From Azolla caroliniana (taxonomy: Eukaryota > Plantae > Polypodiophyta), in assembly GCA_043228905.1 (NCBI GenBank), contig JBHGNT010000006.1, positions 19,654,001 through 19,718,000 of the forward strand: a stretch of 64,000 nt of DNA, read 5' to 3'. Shown here in pieces: positions 1-17,928 of this stretch. The notes beneath the pieces are model-generated. The model had not been told where the DNA came from. It saw nothing but the letters and a program-made list of their open reading frames with translations, and searched no databases. Positions within the stretch are counted from its first letter, which is position 1. Each line of letters begins with the position of its first letter. Both the position numbers and the translations under genes were made by a program.

Positions 1-1797
1 GGAGGTCACGTAGTAGTTGCCGAAGCTAGATGGCTTCACGTGTGGCATTGGTAGCGCCCTGGTACTCAACCTCAATGCTCAACAGAGCCACAATTGGCTG
101 CTTTTTGCTGCTCCTCACAACAGCTGCGCTACCACGAGAAAACATGTAACCGGAGGTGGATCGACGATCCAATGCATCACCAACCCAGTTGGCATCGGTA
201 TATCCGACTAGCTTCCCAGTTATACCGTGTCGGTATAACAGTCCCTGATCCTTCGTGCTGCTAACATACCAGAGTATCTGGTGTGCGCACTGAAGGTGCT
301 CGACGGTTGGCTTCTGCATGAACTGGCTGATCACTCCGATCGGGTAACTAATGTCGGGTCGAGTGATTGTCAGGTATATGAGGCTTCCGACAATTTGTCG
401 GAACCATTTCTCATCGTAGGCCGGTCCGGAGTCTGGACTTATCTTCAAGTTCCGGTCCAGGGGTGTAGAGATCAACCGACATTCTGTCATGCCGAACTTG
501 TACAACATATTCAACACATAATAGCGTTGTGAGAGAAATATGCCATCGGGGGTTCGGATCACCTCGATCCCAAGAAAGTAATAAAGGTCCCCCAGGTCCT
601 TCATTTCAAATGCGTCTGACAGCTGGGACTTCACTCAGCCAATTTCAACGAGTCCGGATCCGGTGATGACCAAATCATCTACATAAAGCAAAATGCAAAC
701 CGGACCATCCAGACCGTTTCGGATGAACAATGAAGAGTCAGACTTTGAGGCTGCAAACCCCATCTTACGCAACTGGTGCATGATCTTCGCATTCCAAGCT
801 ATAGGGGCTTGCTTTAGACTGTAAAGCAACTTCTTGAGCCGGCATACCGCCGATTTGTTCATCTCCGATTGAAAATTGGGGAATTGGATCATATAGACAT
901 GTTTTTCAAGATCACCTTGAAGAAATGCATTCTTCACGTCCATTTGGTGAAGATGCCACCCCCTTGCTGCAGCAATCCCTAGTTCTACATGAACCGTTGT
1001 CATCTTCGCTACCGGAGCGAATGTCGCGTCGTAGTTGATTCCATGAGTCTACGCATATCCCTTCGCCACTAACCGGGCCTTGTACCGGTTAACCGAACCG
1101 TCAACATTGTACTTTACCTTGTACACCCAATTACATCCGATCGGTTTACAGTGTCGAGGAGGGTCAATGAGGTCCCATGTGTCGTTGGCATCAAGTGCTC
1201 GCATTTTTTCCTCCATAGCGGCACGCCAATTTGCATCCTTTGCCGCTTTTGCGTAGCTCTCTGGCTCACGCATTTCCGCCACTTTGGTCATGTACGCATA
1301 GTGATGCACCATGTACTCATTGTACCCATACCGCGTAACGGGGTTCTTTTGGCGGGAAGACCGGCGTAACTTGTCATCACCCAGTTTGGGGCCCTTCTTG
1401 GCCGGTTCAGACTTCGTTCCCAAAGATCCGCCTTCATCCTTTCCGGAGTCAGATCCACTTTGATCCGACTCTTCACTACCAGTGTCGTATTCCAGCATCT
1501 TCTTCTTCCCCTTCTCTTTGCGCGTGAACCATCTCCTCGGTTCCTTGCGCGGAGAGAGCACGACAGAGTTTCCACTACTCGCCGGTTGCTCATCCGACTG
1601 GTCACTTTGACCCAGTCGTTCATTCAGTCTGCTCAACCAAAACGATTCCGGACTCTCTTCTAGACTCTCAAGCTCGTCATCTTCTATCTAGACTGGTTCA
1701 TGCTCACTAGCCTCATCTTCCGAAATCGGGTCTTCGTCGGGAGTTGGAGTCGGTAGGGTGTACCATGATGCCGACTTATCAAACTCGATATCTCGAC
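1..1797 (-). mobile_element. Ty1/copia internal region (integrase C-terminus, RT, RNase H), decayed; left part of an element split by the insertion at 1798-17244
   Basis: ORFs 1049-1636, 635-1003 and 26-634 carry [26 protein letters not shown] and GYTDANW..RRSTSGY, broken by stops. Near-identical to the copia at 40943-46487. Confidence 0.95.
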
Positions 1798-2844
1798 CCT
1801 AGGGACTCCACTATACATAAGAAGGTTGTATCACGTGCGTTCATGACATCATTTATAAACCCCTTATACGTATGGTTTTTACTATTTTAGTAACCCTTCT
1901 GTAGAAAAAATATTAATAAAAATACCCCTTATTACCAATATATTTTTTGATAACCACCCATTTTAAATACCCTTACATATAAAATATACATGCACACATA
2001 GGTTGCAATCCTAGAAGGGATCAATGACCATCTTTACAATTGATGACTCGCAAAATTATGAATCGACATTAAACATCATATGCAAATTCCTAGAAATGCT
2101 TCATTAAGTGCCACATAGATTGAAAACACAATGTGTAGTACAAAGTAATGTACACACAATTAGGAAACATTACACAAAAACACTACAGGTATAACATATA
2201 CATGCCACATATAAGTTTTTGTTTTTAGTTTATTGAGACGTATGAAGAACATTGAGCGATAAAAAACAATGTAATTTACAATAAAACAATCTTGAACTTA
2301 ACACATACATCTCAAAGAGCACATATGGAACAATCCAAAATGCATATCAATAATGAAATTACTAACAAATCAACATTATGTTTGGTTTCATGGATATAGA
2401 CTCATATAAAGCCATAATATTATTTTTTCTCAAACACATTGATCAAACAAATGGCAACCTACTTCATATTTCCATTTGAAATGTAAGACATCATCTATTC
2501 ACATACTCTTACCCAAATCAAAATGAAATAAAATAAATCATTTTGTTATTGCAATATCTACTTAAAAAACTTATTACAATAAAGGTTACCCTTATAAAGA
2601 CTGAGTATATAAAAAGAAAACCCTAAGAAGTTCATTTTAGGCTGTAAATTTCATGTCGTTTCCATCTTCAACATTGGACCTATATCATAAAATGTAACAA
2701 CAAAAGCAAGAAATCTTAATATACATGGAAGTAAAGAAATCAGAAAATATATTTGGAATACCGTAGGTTTATATTTGGTTTCTACTCTTTTCTCCTTTTC
2801 CTGTTAAAATAAAAAGCATAAATATTAAGTTACTTTAATATATA

Positions 2845-5060
2845 TTATATATGTACATGTATGCAAGTATATAATTCAAAACAGCTTATATATACATACC
2901 TGGATTTCATTTCCAAAAGAAAATCGTTGAAAACTTTACAATCGCTTTCATCTAATAGATAGTTATCACATTTTGCATTATATGTGAGGTTCGTTAATCC
3001 AATAATTGACTCAAAGTCAACCATTTTAATATCTGTCAAATCATATGCAAATAATCTACTCCCCTTAATCCTCCTATACCAACCAAGTTGTAATTGAACA
3101 TCTTCAAGCCTATCCATCAAGTCAATTCCTCTCTTATACTCCACAAATTTATTTCCAATCTTTCTTCGCATCCTTTGTACTCGTCCTAAGTACCAAACAA
3201 CATTTTTATTTGATATTCCTTTTCTTTTCAGTCTTGTTGAATTAACATCTTCTTTAGTAAAGAATACAACACAATCTGAACCAATCCCAATTAGGTTCCC
3301 ATTTCCATTTAGGAAATCATTTGCATTCTCACATGAGTAGAAGACGCCTTCTCTTACACATGTGAGTCTATCCTTTGACAATGTTGGATTACCATTTAGA
3401 TGACACACAAGTGTCGATTTAAATATAATCTTATCATCCACTTGAACAAATGAAGAGACTTTAGAGTTCACATTGTTGTCATCCAATATAGCATCCAATT
3501 CACGGCGAATTTCACTTATTACAATCTCATCATCATTCTCCACACATTCATGCATTGTGAAGTTTTTATTGTGTTAAGCACATTCTTCATCATCTTTCTC
3601 TCCATATATATAACTCAAGGATTGTTTTGTCTCAATCCCGGGATAATTCCACCATTGCCCATTGTGTTTAGGCTTCATATTTAACGACTCACATAAAATT
3701 TGGGCTTCTTTTAAACCTTCTTTAAGTGCAAAAACAAGTTGATCATCATTTGAGATATCAATGTAGTTTTTTAAGTTTGCAAGAGGCTTGTCATGCATGA
3801 ATTGAGTTTAGACCATATTGATTCTTGCTTCATATGAGCTCTTGGAAAAACCAATCCATTATCAATGCACTCAAATTTGGCAAGCTTGTTTACATTTCCA
3901 CTACAATGCAAAACATCTGGTATATCAAACGCACGCTCCATACCAATCATTCCCCCTATTTTACTAAAAAATATCTCAGCTCCATCAGACCCTGTGAGAT
4001 GCAATGGACATTCTAGTTATGGATAAAAGTCACGAAACATTTTTATAAGTAAAACTACAAAGTGACAAGATATTTGTACATCCAAAAATGTTTCTCGACT
4101 AATGAAATTACTTTTTAAGTTATAAATTGGATTATCTAGACTCCATAATCTCCATATTTGAAAGAAGAATGCAACTTTAGATGCAAGTACCACACGCTTG
4201 AATAAGCTCTCATGAGGGGATAGAAAAATATCAATATAGTCACCTAATATATGCAAGTATACATGTGTTCCCAAAGCGCCTCTTTCTCTTACTTTGACAC
4301 CTTCTCCACCTTGGTATAACATCTTTAAACAATTAGTAACATTTCTACTTGCAATTCTTTGAGCTCCAGCCCAATTTTGTCTATCTTCTCTCGTAATATC
4401 ACATTCCCTTAAGCCATGTGCATCAATAGAGAAGTTATTATATACCAAAGACACATGATTCAATGTGATCCATACATCCCCAATTACTAATTGTCTTGAG
4501 GGATTATCTAGTGCATTCACAAGTTTCTTTCCATTATGGATGAAATCTTGATCATGAAGACAACTTACCATATTATTATGCATTTGACCTGTGAAGATCC
4601 AACCATCCCAAGGCAATTTATATCTTAAGCATATGCTTGGGGTTAAGTAATCTTGAAGCATAATCTTTCTTCTCCTACTATCTCCATCAGATGCATGTCC
4701 AACAATTGGCCCAATACTTGTGGAGAGGTGTTTTTCCCATAAAGTTTCCACTTCATTCCATTGGCATTTTACAAAATCTGTATTAAAGCAATTACATGTA
4801 CATTGTACAACCGATACTAATCGTGGAAGTTTAGGGTGAAGAGGATTCGCAATTAACACCCTAGCATAGTGTCCAACCACATAATCTTTAAAGGAGCTAA
4901 CAATGGTTTCATAACCAGCATTAGAGTCACCCACCTTTATCATACATGATGAGACACATTGATGATTGGATGACTTCAGCCCACAAAAACCCAAAAGTAA
5001 ATCATTTGAGCTATCCCACTTAACATTCCGCTTAATCACAGTCCCATCCTCAACAATATG
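2845..5060 (-). pseudogene. P-element/THAP9-like DDE transposase, N-terminus missing, with 2 in-frame stops and 1 frameshift
   Basis: ORFs 4017-5168, 3771-4004, 3574-3798 and 2845-3555 join up. Motifs occur in P-transposase order: EDGTVIKRNVKWDSSNDLLLGF, ASDGDS, DQDFIHNGKKLVN (DxxHxxK), DRQNW, GSDGAEIFFSKIGG. Confidence 0.75.
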
Positions 5061-5333
5061 TTTGTGTGTGTGTATGTATGTTCCATACAACATATATATG
5101 TGTCCATATGTGTATGTATATTCTACACGTGTGCGTATGTGTGTGTGTTTATGTATGTATGTGTGCACATATTGTATTGTATGTATGTGTTATATGTGTA
5201 AATGTGTATGTATGTAAGTGTATATATGTGTATATAGGTATGTGTGTATGTATGTTCCATACAACATATATGTGTGTGTGTATGTATGTTCCATACAACA
5301 TATATATGTGTCCATATGTGTATGTATATTCTA

Positions 5334-5398
<65 letters not shown>

Positions 5399-7113
5399 AT
5401 GTATGTATGTGTTATATGTGTAAATGTGTATGTATGTAAGTGTATATAGGTATGTGTGTATGTATGTTCCATACAACATATATGTGTGTACATGTGTGTA
5501 TGTATATTCTACACATGTGTGTGTGTGCGTGTTTATGTATGTATTGTTTGTATTCCATGTGTATGTATGTATGAGTGTACATATTGTATTGTATGTATGT
5601 GTTATATCTGTAAATGTGTATGTATGTGTATATAGGTATGTGTGTATATATGTACATATTGTATTGTAATGTATTAATTTCGTTTATTGTATGTATGGCC
5701 CGTGTGTGTGTGTGTGTCTAAGAATTTATGTGTTGGTTTATGTATGTATGTATGTGTGCATTATATGTGTATATAGGTATTGTATGGATTGTATGCATGT
5801 TGTATAGGTATGTGTGTATTATGTACATATTGTATTGCATTTTATTTAATTGCATTTATTATATGTATTTCATGTGTGTGTTGTGTATTATGTTTGTGTG
5901 TGTGTATGTATGTTCCATACAACATATATATGTGTCCATATGTGTATGCGTATTCTTCACGTGTGTGTGTGTGTGTTTATGTATGTATGTGTTATATGTG
6001 TAAATGTGTATGTATGTAAGTGTATATAGGTATGTGTGTATGTATGTTCCATACAACATATATGTGTGTACATGTGTGTATGTATATGTATTCTACACAT
6101 GTGTGTGTGTGTGTGTTTATGTATGTATTGTTTGTATTCCATGTGTATGTATGTATGTGTTATATGTGTAAATGTGTATGTATGTGTATATAGGTATGTG
6201 TGTATATATGTACATATTGTATTGTAATGTATTAATTTCGTTTATTGTATGCATGGCCCGTGTGTGTGTGTGTGTGTGTGTGTTTATGTATGTATGTATG
6301 TATGTATGTATGTATGTATGTATGTACATGTGTGTGTGTGGCTAAGAATTTATGTGTTGGTTTATGTTTGTACTTATGTGTACCTGTAAAATATTTGTAG
6401 AGTAGTTGTGGCAGCCCCAACAGAGAATAATGGTGAGCAAAAGCGGCACGACAAGGCGAGCGGTGGCGGCAAAACGAGAACAGAGGCGGCGGCAAAACGA
6501 GGACAAAAAGAAGGGGAGAAGAAGTAATCGCAGAAATGAGCAGAGAAGAGGAGGGAGCAAAGGAGGAGGCAGCAAATATCTAAATAAAAAAACATGAATG
6601 TTTGAATGTATGTTTAGTATGAATGTATGTTATGTATGTATGTGCACATAATGTATGCATGAATGAATGAATGAATATATATATATATGTAATGTATGCA
6701 TAAAATATGTATGCTTCAATGAATAAACATGAATGAATGAATATATGAATGTACATATGTAATATGTAATGTATGTATATTTGTATGTGTGTGGGTGGGT
6801 GTGGATATTTGTTTGTAATATGTATGTATGTGTATGTACATGTAGCAATGTATAAAAGATTGTATGTATGTGTATGCATATATGCATATGCAAATGTACA
6901 TGATTCAATGTGTATGGATGTGTGATTGTAATATGTGCATAATATCTATGTATATATATGTGTATGTATATGTAGCAATGTATAAATGAATATGTGTATG
7001 TCCATGTACGAATGTACATATGTGTATGCATATATCCATATGTAATGTGTGTGTATGTATAGAAGACTATATGTAGGTGTATATATATATATACGTATGT
7101 GTGTATATATCTA

Positions 7114-7146
<33 letters not shown>

Positions 7147-8927
7147 TGTATGTATGTATGTATGTATGTATGTATGTATGTGTATGTACATGTAGCAATG
7201 TATAAAAGACTATATGTATGTCCATGTATGAATGTATATATGTGTATGCATATATGCATATGTCATGTATGTATGTGTATGCATATATGCATATGCAAAT
7301 GTACAGGATTCAATGTGTATTGATGTGTGATTGTAATATATGCACAATATCTATGTAGATATCTGATGTATATATGTGTATGTATGTGTAGCAATGTATA
7401 AATGAAGATATGTATGTCCATATACGAATGTACATATGTGTATGCATATATCCATATCTAATGTATGTATGTATGTGTATGCATATATCCATATGACAAT
7501 GTACATGATTCAATGTGTATGGATGTGTGATTGTAATATTTATGTATATATCTAATTTATGTATATGTAGACAGTAGCAATATATAAATGAATATAGGTA
7601 TGTCCATGTATGAATGTACATACGTGTATGCATATATATGACAATGTACATGATTCAATGTATATGAATGTGATTGTAATATATGCATATGCAATGTATG
7701 TATGTAGACACATGAATGTACATGTATGCATGTACATATGTATATATATGTAATATGCAATGCATGTATGTTTGTATGTGTAATAGTGTACTATGCATAC
7801 ATGAGTGTGTTCATAATATTTATGTATGTGTAAGCATACATGTATGTATTGTAGTTGGTGATGAAATGTATGTATGTATGTGTATGTAACATATTTATGT
7901 GTATGCATGCATGTAATGTATGTATATATGTGTATGGATGTATGTTTGTAAAACTTTTAACATTGTAGGCATATGTACATATATATATGGTGATATGTGG
8001 AATATGTATGTACATATGTAATGTATGTATGTGTATGCATATATGTATATGTCAATATACATGATTTAATGAGTATGAATATGTTTGTAATATGTGCATA
8101 TATATCTAATGTATGTATGTATGTGTGTGTATGTGGTCATATATATGTAAATGTATGAATGTATGTACGTGTATATATGTAATGTATTTATGTATCTATA
8201 TTTTTGGGATATTTTCATGTTTAGTACATATGTATATGGCTCGTATATGGATGTATGTTTGTAATATGTACGTAATATGCATGTATATATCCAATGTATG
8301 TGTAAGTATACATATATCTAATGTTTGTTTGTTTGTGTGTGTGTGTGTGTAAGTATTGTGGTTTGTATGGTCTAGTATGATCTATACATATGGTGATATG
8401 TAGAATATGTATGTACATATGTAATATATCTATGTATGTATATATGTAATTTATGCATGTGTAAATTTGTATATTGTGTAATAGGTATGGATTATGTGCT
8501 ATGTAATATCTAATTTATTTATGTGTAAGTATACATATAGATATCTAATGTGTGTGTAAGTATACATATATATAATGTGTGTGTGTGTAGTATGTATATA
8601 TATAAGTATTGTGGTTTGTATGGTCCAGTATAATCTATACATATATATATATGGTGATATGTGGAATATGTATGTACATATGTAATATGTATATCTATCT
8701 ATGTATCTATATATGTATATATGTAATTTATGTATGTCTAAATTTGAATATTGTGTAATATATGCTATGTAATATCTAATTTATTTATGTGTGTGCACGT
8801 GTATATATATGTAATATATGTAACTTGTTTGTAAGTATGAAGATTTGTATATATATAGTATGTAATCTTAGCCTTTAGGTGTTAATATGTATGTGTATGT
8901 GTATACATACATATATATAATATGTAA
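5061..8927. repeat. Degenerate (TG)n/(TATG)n/(TA)n microsatellite tract with higher-order duplications
   Basis: Seen directly: pure (TG)n at about 5338-5396 and (TATG)n at about 7118-7180. Blocks beginning TATGTTCCATACAACATATA recur at about 5077, 5251, 5285, 5463, 5908 and 6043. Confidence 0.95.
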
Positions 8928-9118
8928 ATTTTTATTTTTTTTTCCAAAGTAAAGCTACTTTCTCATTAGTTAGGAAGGATTATTACATAGAGTCTATAAG
9001 GAGATTTATACACACATCGGGGAGACTTCCTCCGATCAAGCCAAAGAAGATGAGCCACTTACATTGCCTTGCGGCCTAACTTAATGTAAGAAGCTACCTA
9101 TGTCCAAGGCGATGCCCT

Positions 9119-12100
9119 TCAATGTTGCCTAGTATGAGTTGGCTCTTGGGGCCTACACCGAAGAGAGGGTGGCAGGTGAGTAGGAAACAACCAATGTGGG
9201 GGCTGGTAGTTCCACCTCGGGCCACTCCCGCCTTGCATCACCATAGGTGTGTTCCGCCATTTCTGCCAAAAGCGCAAACGGGCAGTGGTCACGTCGTTGG
9301 AGTGACTGCAAACCTCTTCCAGTTGCCCTCGTAGGCAGCTGATAAGCGCGAACCATATGTCCATGATCACTTCCTCCGGGGGCCGTACCGTACCTTGGAA
9401 GACCTTGAGGCAACACGCTTTCCATATATACCACAAGGTGAAACCTGCGATCAACATCCAGATTTCCGGAAACCTAGGGGATGCAGGCTGCAAGCCTCTT
9501 TCAAAACGGATCTTGACGATTTTGCCTCTCGTGCATACATAGCACCAACTATCTGCATTGACGGCGTCCGTCCACCCTTCGACCGAGTGATCAATCCATG
9601 CCGCAACGCTCCACGAGGCTGTTCCTTCAACTTCACATGCCACAAGGAGGCGAGTCACTCTATCCCATACCTTTTGAGCTTGAGGGCAATCCCACAAACA
9701 ATGTCTTAGAGACTCAATAGGTAGAGAGCACAGTGGGCAGCCTAACGGGCCGCCACGTTTATCTAACCATTCGCCAACGGTCACCACATTATGACCGATC
9801 TGCCACCAAAAGAGCTTAATCTTTTCAGGCATGTGGAGACGCCAAAGACCCTTCCAAAAGGCAATGAGCGCCTCATCGGGGATGCCCAATGTTCGCCAGC
9901 CGTTGTGAAGGGGGCCGCCTGGCTACAGCTGCAAAGTCCGACCCAATTTAGTGGTGTAATCGAAGAAGTGGTGGAGTCTATCGTCATGTTTCCATCTGAA
10001 ATCCCCGGGGTCCCAATCCAGATCGACAAGGGGGCGACAACCGTATACCCTTAACCTCCAATGGGGTTCCACCTTAGCAACATCCGGGTCTGTCTTCCAG
10101 ATGTTATCAATCTGTGCCACCACTCGGATTGGGTGCCAAGAGCCTCTGCTCTGGCTGTCCCCAAAAACTGTATCACTCCCCGATCCGCTCATGCCCTTTA
10201 GCGACTTGACCATTCCAGCCTCGTCAAAGAGACCGAACCATGCATGTTCTCTCGCCTCCCCCATCGGAACCCTGTCAACTGCCTCAGCTATCAGTCTCCG
10301 CATTTTCGTAGCTCCCTTGAGGGGAGGGAAAAGGTCCTCTTGGGCTCTTCCTGAATCAGCCATACGTCTCCAATCGTCTATAGATAGGAGGCCTGTTTGT
10401 GCCAACTTTCCCCATGCTAGGCCCTTAAGTTGCCCTAGCATCGCGTTGTCATTCGTTCGCACATGAGGATTCCAGAATAGTGGCTGTCTAGTCCATTCGG
10501 TCAATGTCTCCGGGGTGTGCTTGACCAAATGCTGTCGTATATGGCACCATGCCCGCAAGATGGAGTTCGTGATCCTGTCCTCCGGATGGCAAGCCAGCCT
10601 AGGTGGGACTCCGCTCGTGCAGCACCAATTCAAGGAGTCGGGCCAAGGCCTACCATACTTGGGAGTCCCTACTTGCAGCCTGTTGCGAAGAAGTACCTTC
10701 CAGCACCCCTCACCTGGCAGGAGGCAGCGAACCACCATTTTAGCCAGCAATGCACGACTCCGCATTAAGGGGTCTATGAGGCCAAGCCCCCCTTTGGCCC
10801 GCGGTTGCATTAACCAACACCATGAGACTCTGGCGGCAGCCCTTGGGTTGTCCTTACCTGACCATATAAAACCCCTAATGGCAGCCTTAATCGCGTGCAA
10901 ACCTGTAGGGTCCATAATCCAGCATGAGACTGAGTGCCACATGGTAGCGAGCAGCACTTGGTTTGCCACAAGGACCCTACCAGTGAAGGACAATTTAGAT
11001 CTACTCCACTGGTTCAACTTCTTACTTATTTTGGCTTGTACGTGGGCCAATTGCGCTCCCTTGGGGATTGACCTCCCCATCGTAAATCCAAGGTACTTGA
11101 AAGTCGTCCCACTAGGGACCCACGTAAAATCGGCATGGGGTTGCCATCTTGGTGTCCCCTGTTCGCTGAACCATAGACCTTGGGTTTTATTCCAATTGAT
11201 CTTGGCACCAGCCGCCTGACAAAAGTCCTCGACAAGATGTTCAGCCCGCTGTAAATTCTCCTCATCACCTTGCAAGAAAAGAACCGTATCGTCGGCATAT
11301 TCAGATAACAACAAATCTTCAGTCGCATTGGGGATGGGCAATCCCCACAACCCGCTAGTTGGTGCTTGTAAGTAGGCGGAGAAAGCCTCGGTTACAAAGA
11401 GATAGAGATATGGGGCTAGGGGACAACCTTGCCTCACTGAGCGTTGTAGTTGGAAGGCGGGTCCCCTAGATCCAGCCATCAGCACGCTACTCGTAGCTGT
11501 CCGATAGAGTGCAGAAGTGCAATTCCTCCATTTTTGAGGTAGGCCCAAAGCTCTCATCACATTTTCCAAAAAGGGCCATAACACCCTATCGTAGGCCTTC
11601 TCGAAGTCTAGCATCAGAATAGCCGAGCTCGATACGGAGCGACCGGCCAATGCCATAGCTTCCCAAAGAAGCAACACATTATCAAAGATACACCTGTTCT
11701 TGACAAACCCAGTTTGATTGTCGTGTATGATGTCCGGTAAGAAGCTTGCTAATCGCTGAGCTAGGACTTTAGCGAGTATCTTGTATGCCGTGTTAAGGAT
11801 CGTGATTGGACGCCATTGGCGCAACTCTAGGCTTCGCTCTTGGGATTTGGGGATGAGATATATCATCCCCTCAGCCAGACCAATCGACATCTTTCCTGAG
11901 GACCAAATCTCTTGGAACCCGGCTTCCAAGGACGGGATAACACATTCCCAATGAATCTCGAAGAAATCTCGTGAGAGACCATCGGGGCCGGGGCATGCAC
12001 CCCTTCGCAATCCCCTAAGTGCCTCCGAGAGCTCTAAACGAGAGATGGGACTATCGAGCACAACTTCCATCTCTTGGGTTACCTTGGGGTGAATGCAAGA

Positions 12101-13432
12101 CATCACTCGATCAGCCAGCTCCGAGTTTTGCCGCACATGCATAGGTGCAAGGAGGTCACGATAGTATTGTGTTGCCATTTCCAGAACCTCAGTCTTGTCC
12201 TCCGTTATTGAGCCGTCTGGTTTGCGCAGCCCGTGTATACGTCCACCGCCACCCTTGGGTGCCTTGTAGTGAAAGAAATGTCGGTTGACCTTGTCGTCTT
12301 TTCTAGCCCACCATGCTGCGTTTCTTCGAAACAACATTCGGTTCTTCTCCAAAGTCCTTTCCTGTACCTTCATCTTTGCTTCCTCTAGCTTAGTTCTAGA
12401 CCATTTGCAACCAGGGTCTACCTGTAACAGCCGTTGCGCTGCCGCAACGGCCTTCCTTAATTTTGTTTCAATGGCTCTAACCTGTTGGAGGGCGCGCTTG
12501 GTCTCTTGTTGTAAAAAGGAGGAGGAGAGGGCCAATTTTTTCTGCAGATCTTCGCTGGCTGATTCACTGCCCATGGTGTCCTGCCATATACTCTGTAAAC
12601 TGGCCTTCACCTCTTCACTCTTCATGATCTTTATGGGGATCTTTACATTGAGACTGCCCTTGCTATCGTTGGGTGGGTTAAGGTCTAGTCTCACCGGCTG
12701 ATGATCTGAAAAGGTAAGACCTGCCAAGATAGCAAAGGAGCCCCCGAGCTCTTCGAGGGATGAGCTGATGTATATGCGGTCTAGCCGTGCAAGACTACCG
12801 CCCCTAGCATTCCCGGGGGCTCTAGAAAAGTGCAACGAATGTGAGCTTCGCCTAAGGGAAGAGCCCCATGTATCCTTCACCCCGATTTTGCCAATTAGGA
12901 AAGCCCATGAATCCAGCTCCGCACCATAAATAGGCCTCTGGGTCCCTCCTTTCCTATCTCCCAGGTGTTCAGTCATGTTGAAATCACCTGCCATTACCCA
13001 AGCCTCGACATTAGGTAATGTTGTCGCTAGCATCCTCCAAAAGATTGCTCTCTCGGGGGCTGAGTTAGGGGCATAAATGTTTAGCACCCCAATCTGTAGG
13101 CGATTCTATTTCAGAAGCACGTATAAGGCCCGACCCTCCACCAGCGTGCCAGATGATGTTACTTCGTATCGGGCCTTATCGCTGATCGAGATGCAGACCC
13201 CTCCTCTTCGGTGGAGGTCACCCTGCGCAGCCAACCACCATGTGGTCCACCCACCCAACAAGGGGTTTACTAAGCTCTGAGTTCGCTCTTGCGAGAGGTG
13301 GTGTTCCTGCAAAAGCAATATGTCAATATGGCCCCCTATATTAAGGGGATTCAGCTCCTCCTGAAGTTTTCTACACTCTTGGTGTTGTCGGCCTCCACCA
13401 AGGCCCTGTACATTCCACGTTAGGATCCTCAT
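9119..13432 (-). pseudogene. LINE ORF2 (AP endonuclease, RT, zf-RVT) with two in-frame premature stops
   Basis: ORFs 13106-13432, 9923-13087 and 9119-9889 share one frame. Motifs: ILTWNVQGL, LQEHH, GDFN, SDH, WRPITILN, DFEKAYD, VRQGCPLAP, YADD, CPLC..E..RHCLWDC. Confidence 0.93.
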
Positions 13433-14898
13433 CCGAAAACGGTGACGTTGGCGCCCATGTTCGGGCCGATCCCCATGTCATGGGGCAAACTAACACCTGT
13501 TTCGGGGGGTATGGTCTCCACTGCAGGCTGCAAATCCCCTACAAGATTCTCAGCCGGTCGTTCCCGACCCGCTTCAAATAGATCCCGCGATACATTTGTG
13601 CTCCGAAGCGGTGGCACAACTTGCATCCCTCTATCTAACAGAGTCGTCGCCAAACCAGGTGTTGGTCTTCCTATCTTACCCTTTTCTTTGTCCTTGAGCT
13701 TGCCCGTCCGGATCCACAATTTCACTAATCTGAGGCCACTACCACATTCACGTTCCAACGGGAGGGGGGGCTGTGCCAACTTCTCTTCCGGGGTGGACGG
13801 TACAAGTTGGGGTTGCATCTCCATCGGGGTGGAGAACACGAGTTCGGGCTCCCGCAGGGGAAGGCGTGAGGAGTCGCACGGGGACAACATTGCTGCCAAC
13901 GCTGCTGGGTCGCCATCCCCTAACCCTTGAAGAAGTGTAAATCTGTTGGTAGCTCTCACCTGTAGGTTGGGTGCCTTGGCACTCCCGGAGAGGATCTTTA
14001 CTCGTTTCAAGGGTTGCTCGTCCACGCTTGCTGGTGACAAGGTGGCAGGACTTCTTTCAAAGGGGTGGTCATGAAAAACGGCGGGAGAGGAGGCACCTAG
14101 GCCTCCAAGTTTCCCCTTCTTCTTAACGGGTAGCCAAGGAGCCTCTTCACCCTTGGTTGTCCCAACTTTGCCCGAGGGTCGTGGTCCCGAGCTTCCCTTT
14201 CTAATCTTACGAGGACACTCCTTAGCTAGGTGTCCTGTCTGTTTGCAAATGAAACACTGCCCCGGGAGTCCCTCATAAACCACTTTTACCACTGTGAGGC
14301 CTAACTCCTCAGAGTAGAGTCTAATCCTTGATGGAAGTCCATGGAGGGAAGGCACCAAGATACGCAACTTGGGCACCTCCGTGACTGTGTCTGCCATTGA
14401 CGCTTTTTGAGGGCATATCATCCCTACTTGTTCGCCAAAAAGAGGGAGCAGATGGTACAAATGTGGAGGGAGGCCAGGAAATGTTGCGGTGATCACCCTA
14501 GGGTTGTTGAGTTTCCGTAACTCTTCGATCGGATTGAACCCTGGTGACCATGGTTGGAGCAACACCTTGCCGTACTTCAGTTCGAGTACCTTGAGCTCGA
14601 CCAATGGTTGCGCCAGCAAGTCATTACCTAATTCAATGTGGAAGAAGTTTTTCCCTAAACCCCTGACACTCTTGATTACCGGCATGTTCTCCAACACAGC
14701 CACCTGAAACATGTCCCGAACCATGCCCCGACTTGGTCTACCTGCCAGAAACCTACATAGGAAGGAGGTACGCCGTAGGCGTTCGATTTCTTCCGCTAAG
14801 ACACGGTTAGCCTCAGGGGACAGGGTAATGGCGAGATCTGATCCACCTTCTTCATCAAGCAAACTGGGCGCTGGTGGAAGCTCGATTCCTCCCATCAT
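13429..14898 (-). CDS. LINE ORF1 (DUF4283-like domain plus CCHC zinc knuckle)
   Basis: 489-aa open frame with LQPWSPGFNP, FPGLPPHLY and YEGLPGQCFICKQTGHLAKECP. Confidence 0.9.
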   Translation of the reverse strand: MMGGIELPPAPSLLDEEGGSDLAITLSPEANRVLAEEIERLRRTSFLCRFLAGRPSRGMVRDMFQVAVLENMPVIKSVRGLGKNFFHIELGNDLLAQPLVELKVLELKYGKVLLQPWSPGFNPIEELRKLNNPRVITATFPGLPPHLYHLLPLFGEQVGMICPQKASMADTVTEVPKLRILVPSLHGLPSRIRLYSEELGLTVVKVVYEGLPGQCFICKQTGHLAKECPRKIRKGSSGPRPSGKVGTTKGEEAPWLPVKKKGKLGGLGASSPAVFHDHPFERSPATLSPASVDEQPLKRVKILSGSAKAPNLQVRATNRFTLLQGLGDGDPAALAAMLSPCDSSRLPLREPELVFSTPMEMQPQLVPSTPEEKLAQPPLPLERECGSGLRLVKLWIRTGKLKDKEKGKIGRPTPGLATTLLDRGMQVVPPLRSTNVSRDLFEAGRERPAENLVGDLQPAVETIPPETGVSLPHDMGIGPNMGANVTVFG

Positions 14899-15360
14899 AG
14901 CGAGATTATGTGTCTTGCGAGCCTAGGTTGTATGTGTTGTTCTTCCCTTCCCCCTTTGTTTTGTGTTTTTTTTAATGTGTTACTTTGCGTTTTCTAGTTG
15001 GGGGAGGGAGGGAGGATTGTGTGTGAGGGTACCTAAACAGCAGTTCGCGTTGTGCTCCTCCTCTTGCTCTGTTGGACAGCGCGCGTGTTCCTCAACGTGC
15101 ACCTACTCCTGCTCCTGCTCGCCTTTTTCTGCTGTTCCCACTCCGCGCTCTGCTGCATTTGCTCCTGCCAACGCTCTGCTGCTTATTACCTGCAGTTCTC
15201 CAGTGTGACGGCCTGGACAGCAGTTGGCGCCTCTTGCTCTGTTGGGCAGCGCGCGCGTTCCTCAGCGTGCACCTGCTCCTGCTCCTGCACGCCATGTCTA
15301 CGCGCCCTGTTCCGCTGCGTTTGCTCCCGCCATCGCTAATCCCTACTTCTAACTTTCCTC

Positions 15361-16058
15361 TATATAATATGTAATTTATTTTTGTGTGTTTTGTATGTAT
15401 ATATGCATTTGTGTATGTATATATGTATGTAATATGTAATTTTATTGTATGTATTATGTACATATTTACATATGGTAATATATATTTGTACATATATTTA
15501 TGTTTAGTTAATATGTATGTATAAATGAGTGTAATGTATGTATATACATATTCATGGATGTGTGATGTGTGATATATGAATGTAGCTTGTAGGTATATAT
15601 GCATGTGTGATGTGTGTTATGTTTATGTGTGTATGTATGTACATATTGTATTGTATTGTATGTATGGAATGTGTGTATGTGTATATAATATATATATACA
15701 TATATTATTATATATAATATGAATTTTATTTTGTGTGTGTTTGGTTTGTATATTTGCATTTGTATATAATTGTGTGTATAATAATAAATGTGTGTAATAT
15801 GTAATATATAAAATATGTTTGGACGGAAGTGTATGTATAAATGTAATATGTAGTTTTTATGTATGTATGTCAATATATATGGCCAATTCTAATCATAGTT
15901 CTAGCCCTACGTCTCATTCGTGTCATACTCAAACGCCAATATTCGTATCATACTCATACGTGAAAAGGCTCCAAGTATGATTGAAATCCATACGCGGTAC
16001 ATAGATATATTATATATACATATGGTGTATATGGTGTACATAGTGTGTGTGTGTGAGG

Positions 16059-16109
<51 letters not shown>

Positions 16110-17000
16110 TGTGTGGTCTAGAGAGAGAAGCCCTGTTTTGCATGTGTGAGGAGACAGTGATTGAGTGTATATCTAGACTCTAGAGAGAGAGAGAGAGAGG
16201 AGCTATGGGTTTTGTCTGTGTGAGGGAGTATGTAATATGTATATTAGATATCTAGATTTTGTAGAGAGAGAAAATCTGTCAGTTCTCGTGTGAGAGAGAG
16301 AGAGAGAGAGTGTGTGTATGTGTGTCAGATGTCACTTCTATTCACAAAATATTATGAATATCAAAAAAAAAAAAACCAAAAAAAAGTCAAAAAAAAAAAA
16401 AAAACCAAACGAATATCGCGTATCATACGCGTACGTTTGCAAACGTTCGCGTACGTCCAGTAAATTGGACGTACGCGAATATTAGGAACTATGATTCTAA
16501 TATGTATGTAGTATGTAATGCATGCATGTATGTGTATGTACATATTTACATATGGTAATATATATTTGTACATATGTAATATATAAAACATGTTTGTAAG
16601 GAAGTGTATGTATAAATGTAATATGTAATTTTTATGTATGTATGTATTATCTATATATGTATGTCAATATATATGGCCAATTCTAATATGTATGTAGTAT
16701 GTAATGCATGTATGTATGTATGTACATATTTACATATGGTAATATATAAAATATGTTTGTAAGTGTATGTATAAATGTAATATGTAATTTTTATGTATGT
16801 ATTATCTATATATGTATGTCAATATATATGGCCAATTTTAATATGTATGTAGTATGTAATGCATGTATGTGTATGTATGTACATTTTTACATATGGTAAT
16901 ATATATTTATCTTTAGTCAGCATGCATGTATAAATGGGTGTAATGTATGTGTGTATATACATATTCATGGATGTAATGTTTGAATGTATGTATGTATGTA
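15361..17000. repeat. TA/TATG-rich degenerate tract with roughly 160-180-bp tandem units
   Basis: Unit ATATATGGCCAATT(C/T)TAATATGTATGTAGTATGTAATGCATG recurs at about 16670 and 16824. The copy at about 15875 is split by the MITE. Confidence 0.85.
15894..16493. mobile_element. Non-autonomous TIR element (MITE, hAT- or P-type), 600 bp
   Basis: 8-bp TSD ATTCTAAT at 15886-15893 and 16494-16501. Termini CATAGTTC and GAACTATG. An uninterrupted empty-site unit lies at about 16675. Internal (GA)n. Confidence 0.85.
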
Positions 17001-17244
17001 TGCCACTTCAAATTTGAGTATTGTTTGCATAATATATTCTTTACTATCTCATTGAAATATCTAATATTTCATGGGCTTATGTAATTTTTTTTTCAGCATA
17101 ATTGATAATACCCTTATGTAAAAATATTTTCAAATCTTTATTAATACCCTTATGTATATATATTCTGTATCTCACTGATTAATTAAAACCCCTTTTGATG
17201 AACCCACGTGCTATCATACAAGTTTTGATAGTGAAGTCCCCGGG

Positions 17245-17928
17245 ATCTCGACTTACTCGTACCTATTTAGTCCGACGGTTATAACACTTATACCCCATCT
17301 GCTCATGCGAGTAACTGACTAGGATGCATTTCTCCGACTTTGGATCTAGCTTCTTCTGCTTCTCATCCGGTACATGCACATATGCTATGTTGCCAAATAT
17401 CCGAAGGTGTCTCAAATTCGGTTTCCGCCCGAAATACAGCTCATGTGTTGACACCTTGTCTCCGATCCGGTTTTGGATGTAGATGGTTGTCCGGACCGCC
17501 TCAACCTAGTAGAATTGAGGCATGTTCTTCTCCTCCAACATTTCCCTTGCCGCGTCGACAATCGACCGGTTCTTCCTTTCGGCCACACCATTTTGCTCTG
17601 GTGAATATTTGCAGCTGAATTCTCTCCGAATTCCGTTCTGCTGCAGATAACTGTTGAATTGGCCAGAAAAGTATTCTTTTCCGCCATCTGACCGCAAGGA
17701 CTTGATCTTCCTCTCCGTTTCCCGTTCAACTAAGCTTTGCAAGTTTCGGAAACATTCGAAGACTTCGGTCTTCCTCTCAATGAGGTAGATCCATGTGTGC
17801 TGGTTGTAGTCATCGATGAAGGAGAAGAAATACCGACTCCCACCAGGACTAACGTTCTGTGTCGGACCCCATACATCTTAATGGATTAGATTGAGCTTGT
17901 TACGGCTCTGGTTTCGTACGGTGGGGAA
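17245..17928 (-). mobile_element. Ty1/copia integrase region, continuing 1-1797, 5'-truncated
   Basis: LRSDGGKEY, PEQNGVAERKNR and KLDPKSEKCI. Matches 43010-43670. Confidence 0.93.

Follow-up and report, generated by a model that had tools for sequence, protein, structure and literature searches.

We conclude that positions 1798 to 17244 of the Azolla caroliniana sequence studied here, a stretch of 64,000 nucleotides that we call the window, are very probably a decayed, nonautonomous cut-and-paste transposon whose transposase belongs to a deep lineage of the P-element/THAP9 type that Pfam does not see. We class the family with the P kind, as a lineage that has diverged from it, and not as a canonical P element, because the length of the target site duplication (TSD), the core architecture, and the catalytic signature are shared with P, whereas the THAP domain fails and Pfam membership is marginal. 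The link to P appears to lie in predicted structure and in sub-threshold sequence matches, with one helix-turn-helix (HTH) match in one relative above threshold.

The predicted fold of the transposase core leads to P. An AlphaFold model of the core of a relative, P0003 (residues 180 to 700, from a 52-sequence alignment), has a mean predicted local distance difference test score of 94.8. When compared with PDB structures by Foldseek, it gave two significant matches, both to the transposase of the Drosophila P element (E values of 8e-11 for 6p5a and 4e-10), followed by Transib (2.5e-3) and Hermes (~0.03). The protein-language-model neighbors among named ESM Atlas clusters all have P-family Pfam domains, and the nearest named clusters by features and shape carry PF21787, PF21788, PF21789, or PF12017. 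In the shape search, template modeling scores reached 0.83 to a THAP9-like HTH cluster and 0.70 to 0.73 to canonical TNP-like clusters. The nearest unnamed clusters are Basidiomycota look-alikes, and any link of the family to Basidiomycota would come solely from these look-alike structures. The best matches thus pointed to P. Best matches to hAT or another superfamily were what the first-pass annotation of this stretch had said would refute its P-element reading.

In the model, a predicted HTH precedes an RNase H fold into which an all-helical domain is inserted between beta5 and alpha4. P and THAP9 likewise place the HTH directly before a split RNase H fold, with an insertion of 190 residues compared to ~185 in this family, and the distance from the second catalytic Asp to the catalytic Glu is 228 residues in DmTNP and 239 in THAP9, compared to ~235 here (PMC8230255). 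Three residues ahead of the catalytic Glu, an Asp is conserved, as in D528/E531 of DmTNP; D528 is a GTP ligand in that enzyme, and the likeness is one of position alone. A conserved beta-barrel with a BAH/Tudor-like look closes the C terminus.

The catalytic signature agrees with this assignment. Residues D249, S368, G370, D422, H425, K429, and E606 (P0003 numbering) are invariant or nearly so in 31 full-length relatives, and D369 and D371 accompany S368 and G370 in an SDGD-type motif. With superfamily definitions taken from PMC8230255 and PMC9587614, the family signature is a DDE triad with D(2)H after the second D, as in P and THAP9, and it is complete in the window copy. All of the motifs listed by the first-pass annotation (D..IK....D...D.L.G, SDG, DxxHxxK, and D..E.FFS) are present there in minus-strand frames: EDGTVIK...D...D.L.G, with the first catalytic D at 5046 to 5048; SDGD at 4680 to 4691; DFIHNGK at 4527 to 4547, with the D(2)H part at 4536 to 4547; and DGAEIFFS, with the catalytic E at 3975 to 3977. 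The C-terminal beta-barrel domain occupies 2848 to 3573. The broken open reading frame (ORF), from 5057 to 2845, also lies where that annotation had placed it. Searches used its separate pieces and never a mended protein.

The transposase belongs to a large eukaryotic family: with the 344-residue piece as the query, HMMER recovered 1438 relatives with E values of <1e-3 among 1.84 billion representatives, 129 of them with E values of <1e-30. Organism labels are available for members from a fern, Adiantum nelumboides (55% identical), from a liverwort, Calypogeia fissa, and from a brittle star, a coral, and a hydrozoan. Each of these proteins is annotated as hypothetical, and a Pfam domain was found in none. 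In a FastTree phylogeny of 134 core sequences, the window protein, its intact counterpart P0177, and the Adiantum and Calypogeia proteins fall into a clade of 17 with a Shimodaira-Hasegawa-like support of 100, with the brittle star protein outside it. This is a quick tree, most rows of which carry no taxon label, and it is consistent with an old plant lineage. The proposal of a poorly described plant P lineage is supported, with the qualification that the family is not limited to plants, as echinoderms and cnidarians have members too.

The boundaries of the element are clear, and 1798 to 17244 is a single insertion. As had been claimed, it is flanked by a perfect 8-bp TSD and bounded by 17-bp terminal inverted repeats (TIRs), although the latter are imperfect, with 14 of 17 positions identical between the left TIR and the reverse complement of the right. 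Each of the mismatches is a transition, and two of the three change the CG of CCCGGGG into TA, which would fit decay of methylated CpG. The 13-mer core of the TIR has two sites in the 64-kb window, both at the TIRs, against a chance expectation of 0.15, and the palindrome CACGTG stands at positions 35 to 40 from both ends. Joining 1797 to 17253 restores a continuous copia integrase frame on the minus strand (...YKCYNRRTK*VRVSRDIEFDKSASW...), so that the description of a precisely split host also holds. Because the integrase gene is split by the element, the element moved after the copia had arrived, as first proposed.

Other copies have the same kind of ends. A 6.6-kb fern-type contig, L003, carries an intact, intronless gene for a 1,122-amino-acid transposase, P0177, whose identity to the window piece is 98%. 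Positions 2645 to 5902 of this contig match window positions 5058 to 1802 with 98.5% identity. The L003 copy stops at the same terminal base as the window copy and reads CTTGGGGACTCCACTAT, and its flank is a different one. The 5' end of the autonomous element is found on none of the contigs. Around intact genes, a search for an 8-bp direct repeat beside a 12-bp inverted repeat with up to 2 mismatches (chance of ~0.05 per locus by our own estimate) gave one candidate per locus, with ends beginning CCCGGGG, CCCTGGG, or CTCGGGG. Counting the window copy, 8-bp TSDs occur at 6 insertions in 5 assemblies, one of them a liverwort, and at all 6 the ends are CCCGGGG-type or have decayed from that type. 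The expectation that further copies would be bounded by these ends and by 8-bp TSDs was thus confirmed at five insertions. Two of these are nearly identical inverted copies on one contig (L004 and L005) whose flanks are swapped, with one GCTTTGAG and one TGTAAAGG next to either copy. Such a pattern would be expected if two insertions, both flanked by 8-bp TSDs, had recombined and so inverted the DNA between them, and inversion between two inverted copies has been reported for Galileo, a member of the P group.

Contigs of four public sequencing runs with three organism labels, placed on window positions 1200 to 5200, have a high summed depth over the element. Depth is greater over the left subterminal 340 bp (1870 to 2137 included) than over the coding part, which fits many short derivatives that share the left end, and internal-deletion joints connect 2783 to 4339 and 2879 to 4318. 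Internally deleted, nonautonomous derivatives are also a feature of P elements. The run contigs further show the copia continuing past 1795 without an insertion. In all four runs, the letter differs at 4019 and at 3576, where the two stop codons of the window copy begin, and there is an extra base behind 3799; therefore, both stops and the frameshift are private to the window copy. The host copia itself is hugely abundant in the four runs, with a summed contig depth over 1200 to 1797 that is 100 to 1000 times that of the transposon, and many copia contigs have deletion joints around 1320 to 1500.

The window copy is dead, nonautonomous, and rearranged (Table 1). Only ~3.3 kb of the 15.4-kb insertion is original element sequence. 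The transposase ORF is broken by stops at 4017 to 4019 and 3574 to 3576 and by a frameshift (loss of 1 base) near 3799. Compared to the intact P0177 and L003, the copy is without the N-terminal 387 codons and everything upstream of them, and tblastn found no N-terminal transposase fragment elsewhere in the window. The breakpoint at 5058 is defined by L003; the run contigs that end at 5053 reflect a skipped repeat (5054 to 5200) and not a breakpoint. In place of the 5' half of the element, these 387 codons included, stands a satellite block. Together with an array at 15375 to ~17100, it makes up ~5.5 kb of TG/TA-rich satellite with periods of 4, 134, 155, 178, and 196; the block may be filler from faulty gap repair or a later expansion. 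A near-full-length long interspersed nuclear element (LINE) lies inside the satellite part and carries its own 14-bp TSD (TATATAATATGTAA, at 8914 to 8927 and 15361 to 15374); therefore, the LINE arrived later than the transposon. The heptamer ACCCTTA occurs 7 times in forward and 0 times in reverse orientation in the whole window and is found near both ends, hence as a direct rather than an inverted repeat. The recurrence of ACCC(C)TTA may mark a binding site or may be an effect of composition.

Table 1. Features of the insertion and its host in the window, and candidate elements around intact transposase genes on other contigs
Feature	Position	Strand	Evidence or details
Host copia, downstream part (integrase end, RVT_2); context, outside the element	26..1789	-	Domain matches (RVT_2 downstream of the integrase junction) and junction
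Left TSD copy, 8 bp, ATCTCGAC	1790..1797	.	8/8 same as 17245-17252; within copia integrase ORF
Left TIR, CCTAGGGACTCCACTAT, decayed form of CCCGGGGACTCCACTAT	1798..1814	+	L003 copy stops at same position
Subterminal and 3' untranslated region	1815..2844	-	CACGTG at 1832-1837; ACCC(C)TT at 1859, 1893, 1924, 1969, 2588
Transposase remnant (residues 388-1122 of intact P0177)	2845..5057	-	ORF pieces, homology to relatives
TG/TA-rich micro-/minisatellite block	5058..8927	.	Homology to intact L003 ends at 5058
LINE: ORF1 (zf-CCHC), ORF2 (endonuclease, RVT_1, zf-RVT), A-rich tail	8928..15360	-	Domains, own TSD
Right AT-rich subterminal region	15375..17227	.	155-bp tandem repeat at 16569-16905; ACCCTTA at 17110, 17146; CACGTG at 17205-17210
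Right TIR, inward reading CCCGGGGACTTCACTAT	17228..17244	-	Paired with 1798-1814
Right TSD copy, 8 bp, ATCTCGAC	17245..17252	.	8/8 same as 1790-1797
Host copia, upstream part (integrase core); context, outside the element	17253..17800	-	Frame continuous with 1797 after insertion removed
Element around intact gene, L001	5312-12252		TSD CGCGCGAC
Element around intact gene, L002, Calypogeia fissa	5750-15856		TIR 16/18; TSD TGTACAAG
Element around intact gene, L006 (L007 = same insertion), JGI metagenome	9595-16421		TSD GCCACACG
Inverted copies on one contig, ~50 kb apart	L004 9146-16887, L005 9147-16886		99.9% identical

The inferred family differs from named P elements in notable ways. An 8-bp TSD with short TIRs is common to this family and to the P/THAP9 group (6p5a/6pe2, Pdre of zebrafish, Galileo, and 1360); the P superfamily is delimited by TSDs of 7 to 8 bp, a range that includes the 8 bp found here. 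In contrast, the ends are of the CCCGGGG type and not CATGATG as in P, and the first two catalytic Asp residues are ~120 residues apart, compared to ~73 in P. The C-terminal barrel is a further difference from P. At the N terminus, where P has its THAP domain, the relatives have a Cys-rich motif, and plant members additionally have CxxC...H...H fingers. As judged from these sequences, plant members seem to carry BED-like fingers in place of THAP, a domain reported to be restricted to animals (PMC7776569), and in the fern the finger region may be a separate exon or ORF. Upstream of the intact transposase gene, a 234-amino-acid ORF (L003 733 to 1437) resembles residues 161 to 300 of the liverwort protein P0210, its finger region, with an E value of 9e-6. 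Two distant members, P0261 and P0263, have a Ulp1 (Peptidase_C48) domain at the C terminus, along with a ZZ/FYVE-like finger.

Several results weigh against placing the family with P. Sequence identity to the P transposase is ~15%, and the Pfam models for P are essentially blind to the family: among 44 relatives scanned against Pfam, 31 of them in the aligned set, P-family contact was seen in 3 of the 31 and reached the threshold in 1. That one, P0061, scores 23.7 bits (cutoff, 23) for the P-type HTH (PF12017), which immediately precedes its RNase H domain; the sub-threshold matches are those of P0060 to PF12017 (E value of 0.0078) and of the Adiantum protein P0001 to PF21787 (0.0022), and the other relatives have no match to PF12017, PF21787, PF21788, PF21789, or PF12596. 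The four ORF pieces of the window matched no Pfam model at E values up to 1, save for a chance match to MVL. When family profiles were compared with PDB sequences, the full-length profile gave only acidic low-complexity matches and the core profile none, and no THAP domain was found in any relative scanned. Of the GTP contacts of DmTNP (K385, K400, V401, S409, F443, D444, N447, and D528; PMC7776569), only the position of D528 could be matched to a conserved residue of the family. The modeled core is that of P0003, a 42%-identical relative, rather than that of the fern protein, and P would be the best solved structure for an unsolved sister superfamily as well. Finally, the family may already be filed in Repbase or Dfam, as P or under another name.

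The first of three other explanations is that the family falls within another named superfamily, Zisupton/KDZ or Novosib, which makes 8-bp TSDs and lacks a solved structure, so that P would only be its nearest solved relative. We consider this improbable. Novosib makes 8-bp TSDs in the Repbase classification. Zisupton does so as well (PMC12730594), and Zisupton/KDZ elements resemble this family in having transposases of ~1000 to 1400 amino acids with Cys-rich N-terminal regions and a patchy distribution among fungi, algae, and animals; the Basidiomycota clusters, the Ulp1 protease domain of the two distant relatives, and the general failure of the Pfam P models on the family could be read the same way. 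However, the D..H motif is invariant in the family, and every named structural and feature neighbor is of the P/THAP9 type. Zisupton is multiexonic, whereas the genes found here are intronless. True Zisupton proteins match the KDZ transposase model PF18758 (PMC9297572), which was found in 0 of the 44 relatives (E values up to 0.05 to 0.1) and in none of the window pieces (E values up to 1), and Zisupton/KDZ was rejected on this ground. Novosib stands outside the superfamilies listed as sharing C/DxxH (PMC9587614).

It is highly unlikely that the element is a divergent hAT, the superfamily to which 8-bp TSDs and short TIRs in plants usually point. The window element shares both of these features with hAT elements (Ac, Hermes), as well as an RNase H fold that carries a helical insertion, occurrence in plants, and, close to the third catalytic residue, a motif of the E..FS type. 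Against this, the family has D(2)H after the second D where hAT has C(2)H, the ~235 residues from the second D to the catalytic E fall far below the 324 residues that separate D248 from E572 in Hermes, and the dimerization domain or any other hAT Pfam domain was found in 0 of the 44 relatives. Together with the fold score, the motif and the missing domains led us to rule out hAT, common though it is in non-seed plants (PMC9641971). As for Transib and RAG1, the C(2)C and H(3-4)H motifs of Transib (PMC12730594) are absent from the family. TSDs of the CMC-Transib clade measure 2 to 5 bp, compared to 8 bp here. The TSD of Transib itself is 5 bp. There is hardly any reason to believe that the TSD and TIRs arose by chance or that the stretch is a composite of unrelated insertions, for although satellite and LINE sequence makes up most of the 15.4 kb and the TIRs are imperfect, the copia frame is restored precisely, the independent copy on L003 stops at the same base, the same end type and 8-bp TSDs surround intact genes in four other assemblies, and the LINE's own TSD lies inside the element.

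Returning to the element as a divergent relative of P, we read the following course of events from the sequence. The element entered the copia integrase gene through an 8-bp staggered cut. Satellite-like filler later took the place of its 5' half, the N-terminal 387 codons among it, and the element took up the LINE and gained two stops and a frameshift. For the family, we infer the following mechanism. In functional copies, a transposase dimer would bind the CCCGGGG-type ends through its N-terminal zinc finger region and the P-type HTH. The DDE RNase H active site, probably split by an all-helical insertion domain that resembles the GTP-binding domain of the P element, would cut and rejoin the DNA, and integration would produce 8-bp target duplications. 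Autonomous copies, such as the one that encodes P0177, would mobilize defective copies in trans.

Reviews of plant transposons count seven superfamilies with TIRs, P not included (PMC10741241), and a 2025 survey of 1007 plant genomes that screened for P with Pfam models found none active (PMC12973397). Surveys of miniature inverted-repeat transposable elements report P within the green lineage only in Chlamydomonas (PMC3964958, PMC9641971). Our own literature search for P-like elements in ferns, liverworts, and land plants found no description, although this is a weak negative. The present results mean that P-type enzymes exist in land plants, in multiple copies and with at least one intact gene, and that they were overlooked because no Pfam model sees them. 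Fern and bryophyte genomes probably misannotate thousands of copies as unknown or as hAT.

We see an even balance for and against a more far-reaching view, namely, that the family forms a separate sister branch to P/THAP9 of ancient origin, active now or very recently in ferns, with non-THAP fingers, CCCGGGG-type ends, and a C-terminal BAH/Tudor-like barrel, and spread over land plants (ferns and liverworts), cnidarians, and echinoderms. If this is true, it would be an eighth superfamily with TIRs for land plants, invisible to the Pfam-based survey of 1007 plant genomes, and its C-terminal barrel could steer insertion by reading chromatin. The family is a natural comparison for P transposition, as regards both whether the GTP requirement is ancestral and what replaces THAP in the recognition of DNA.

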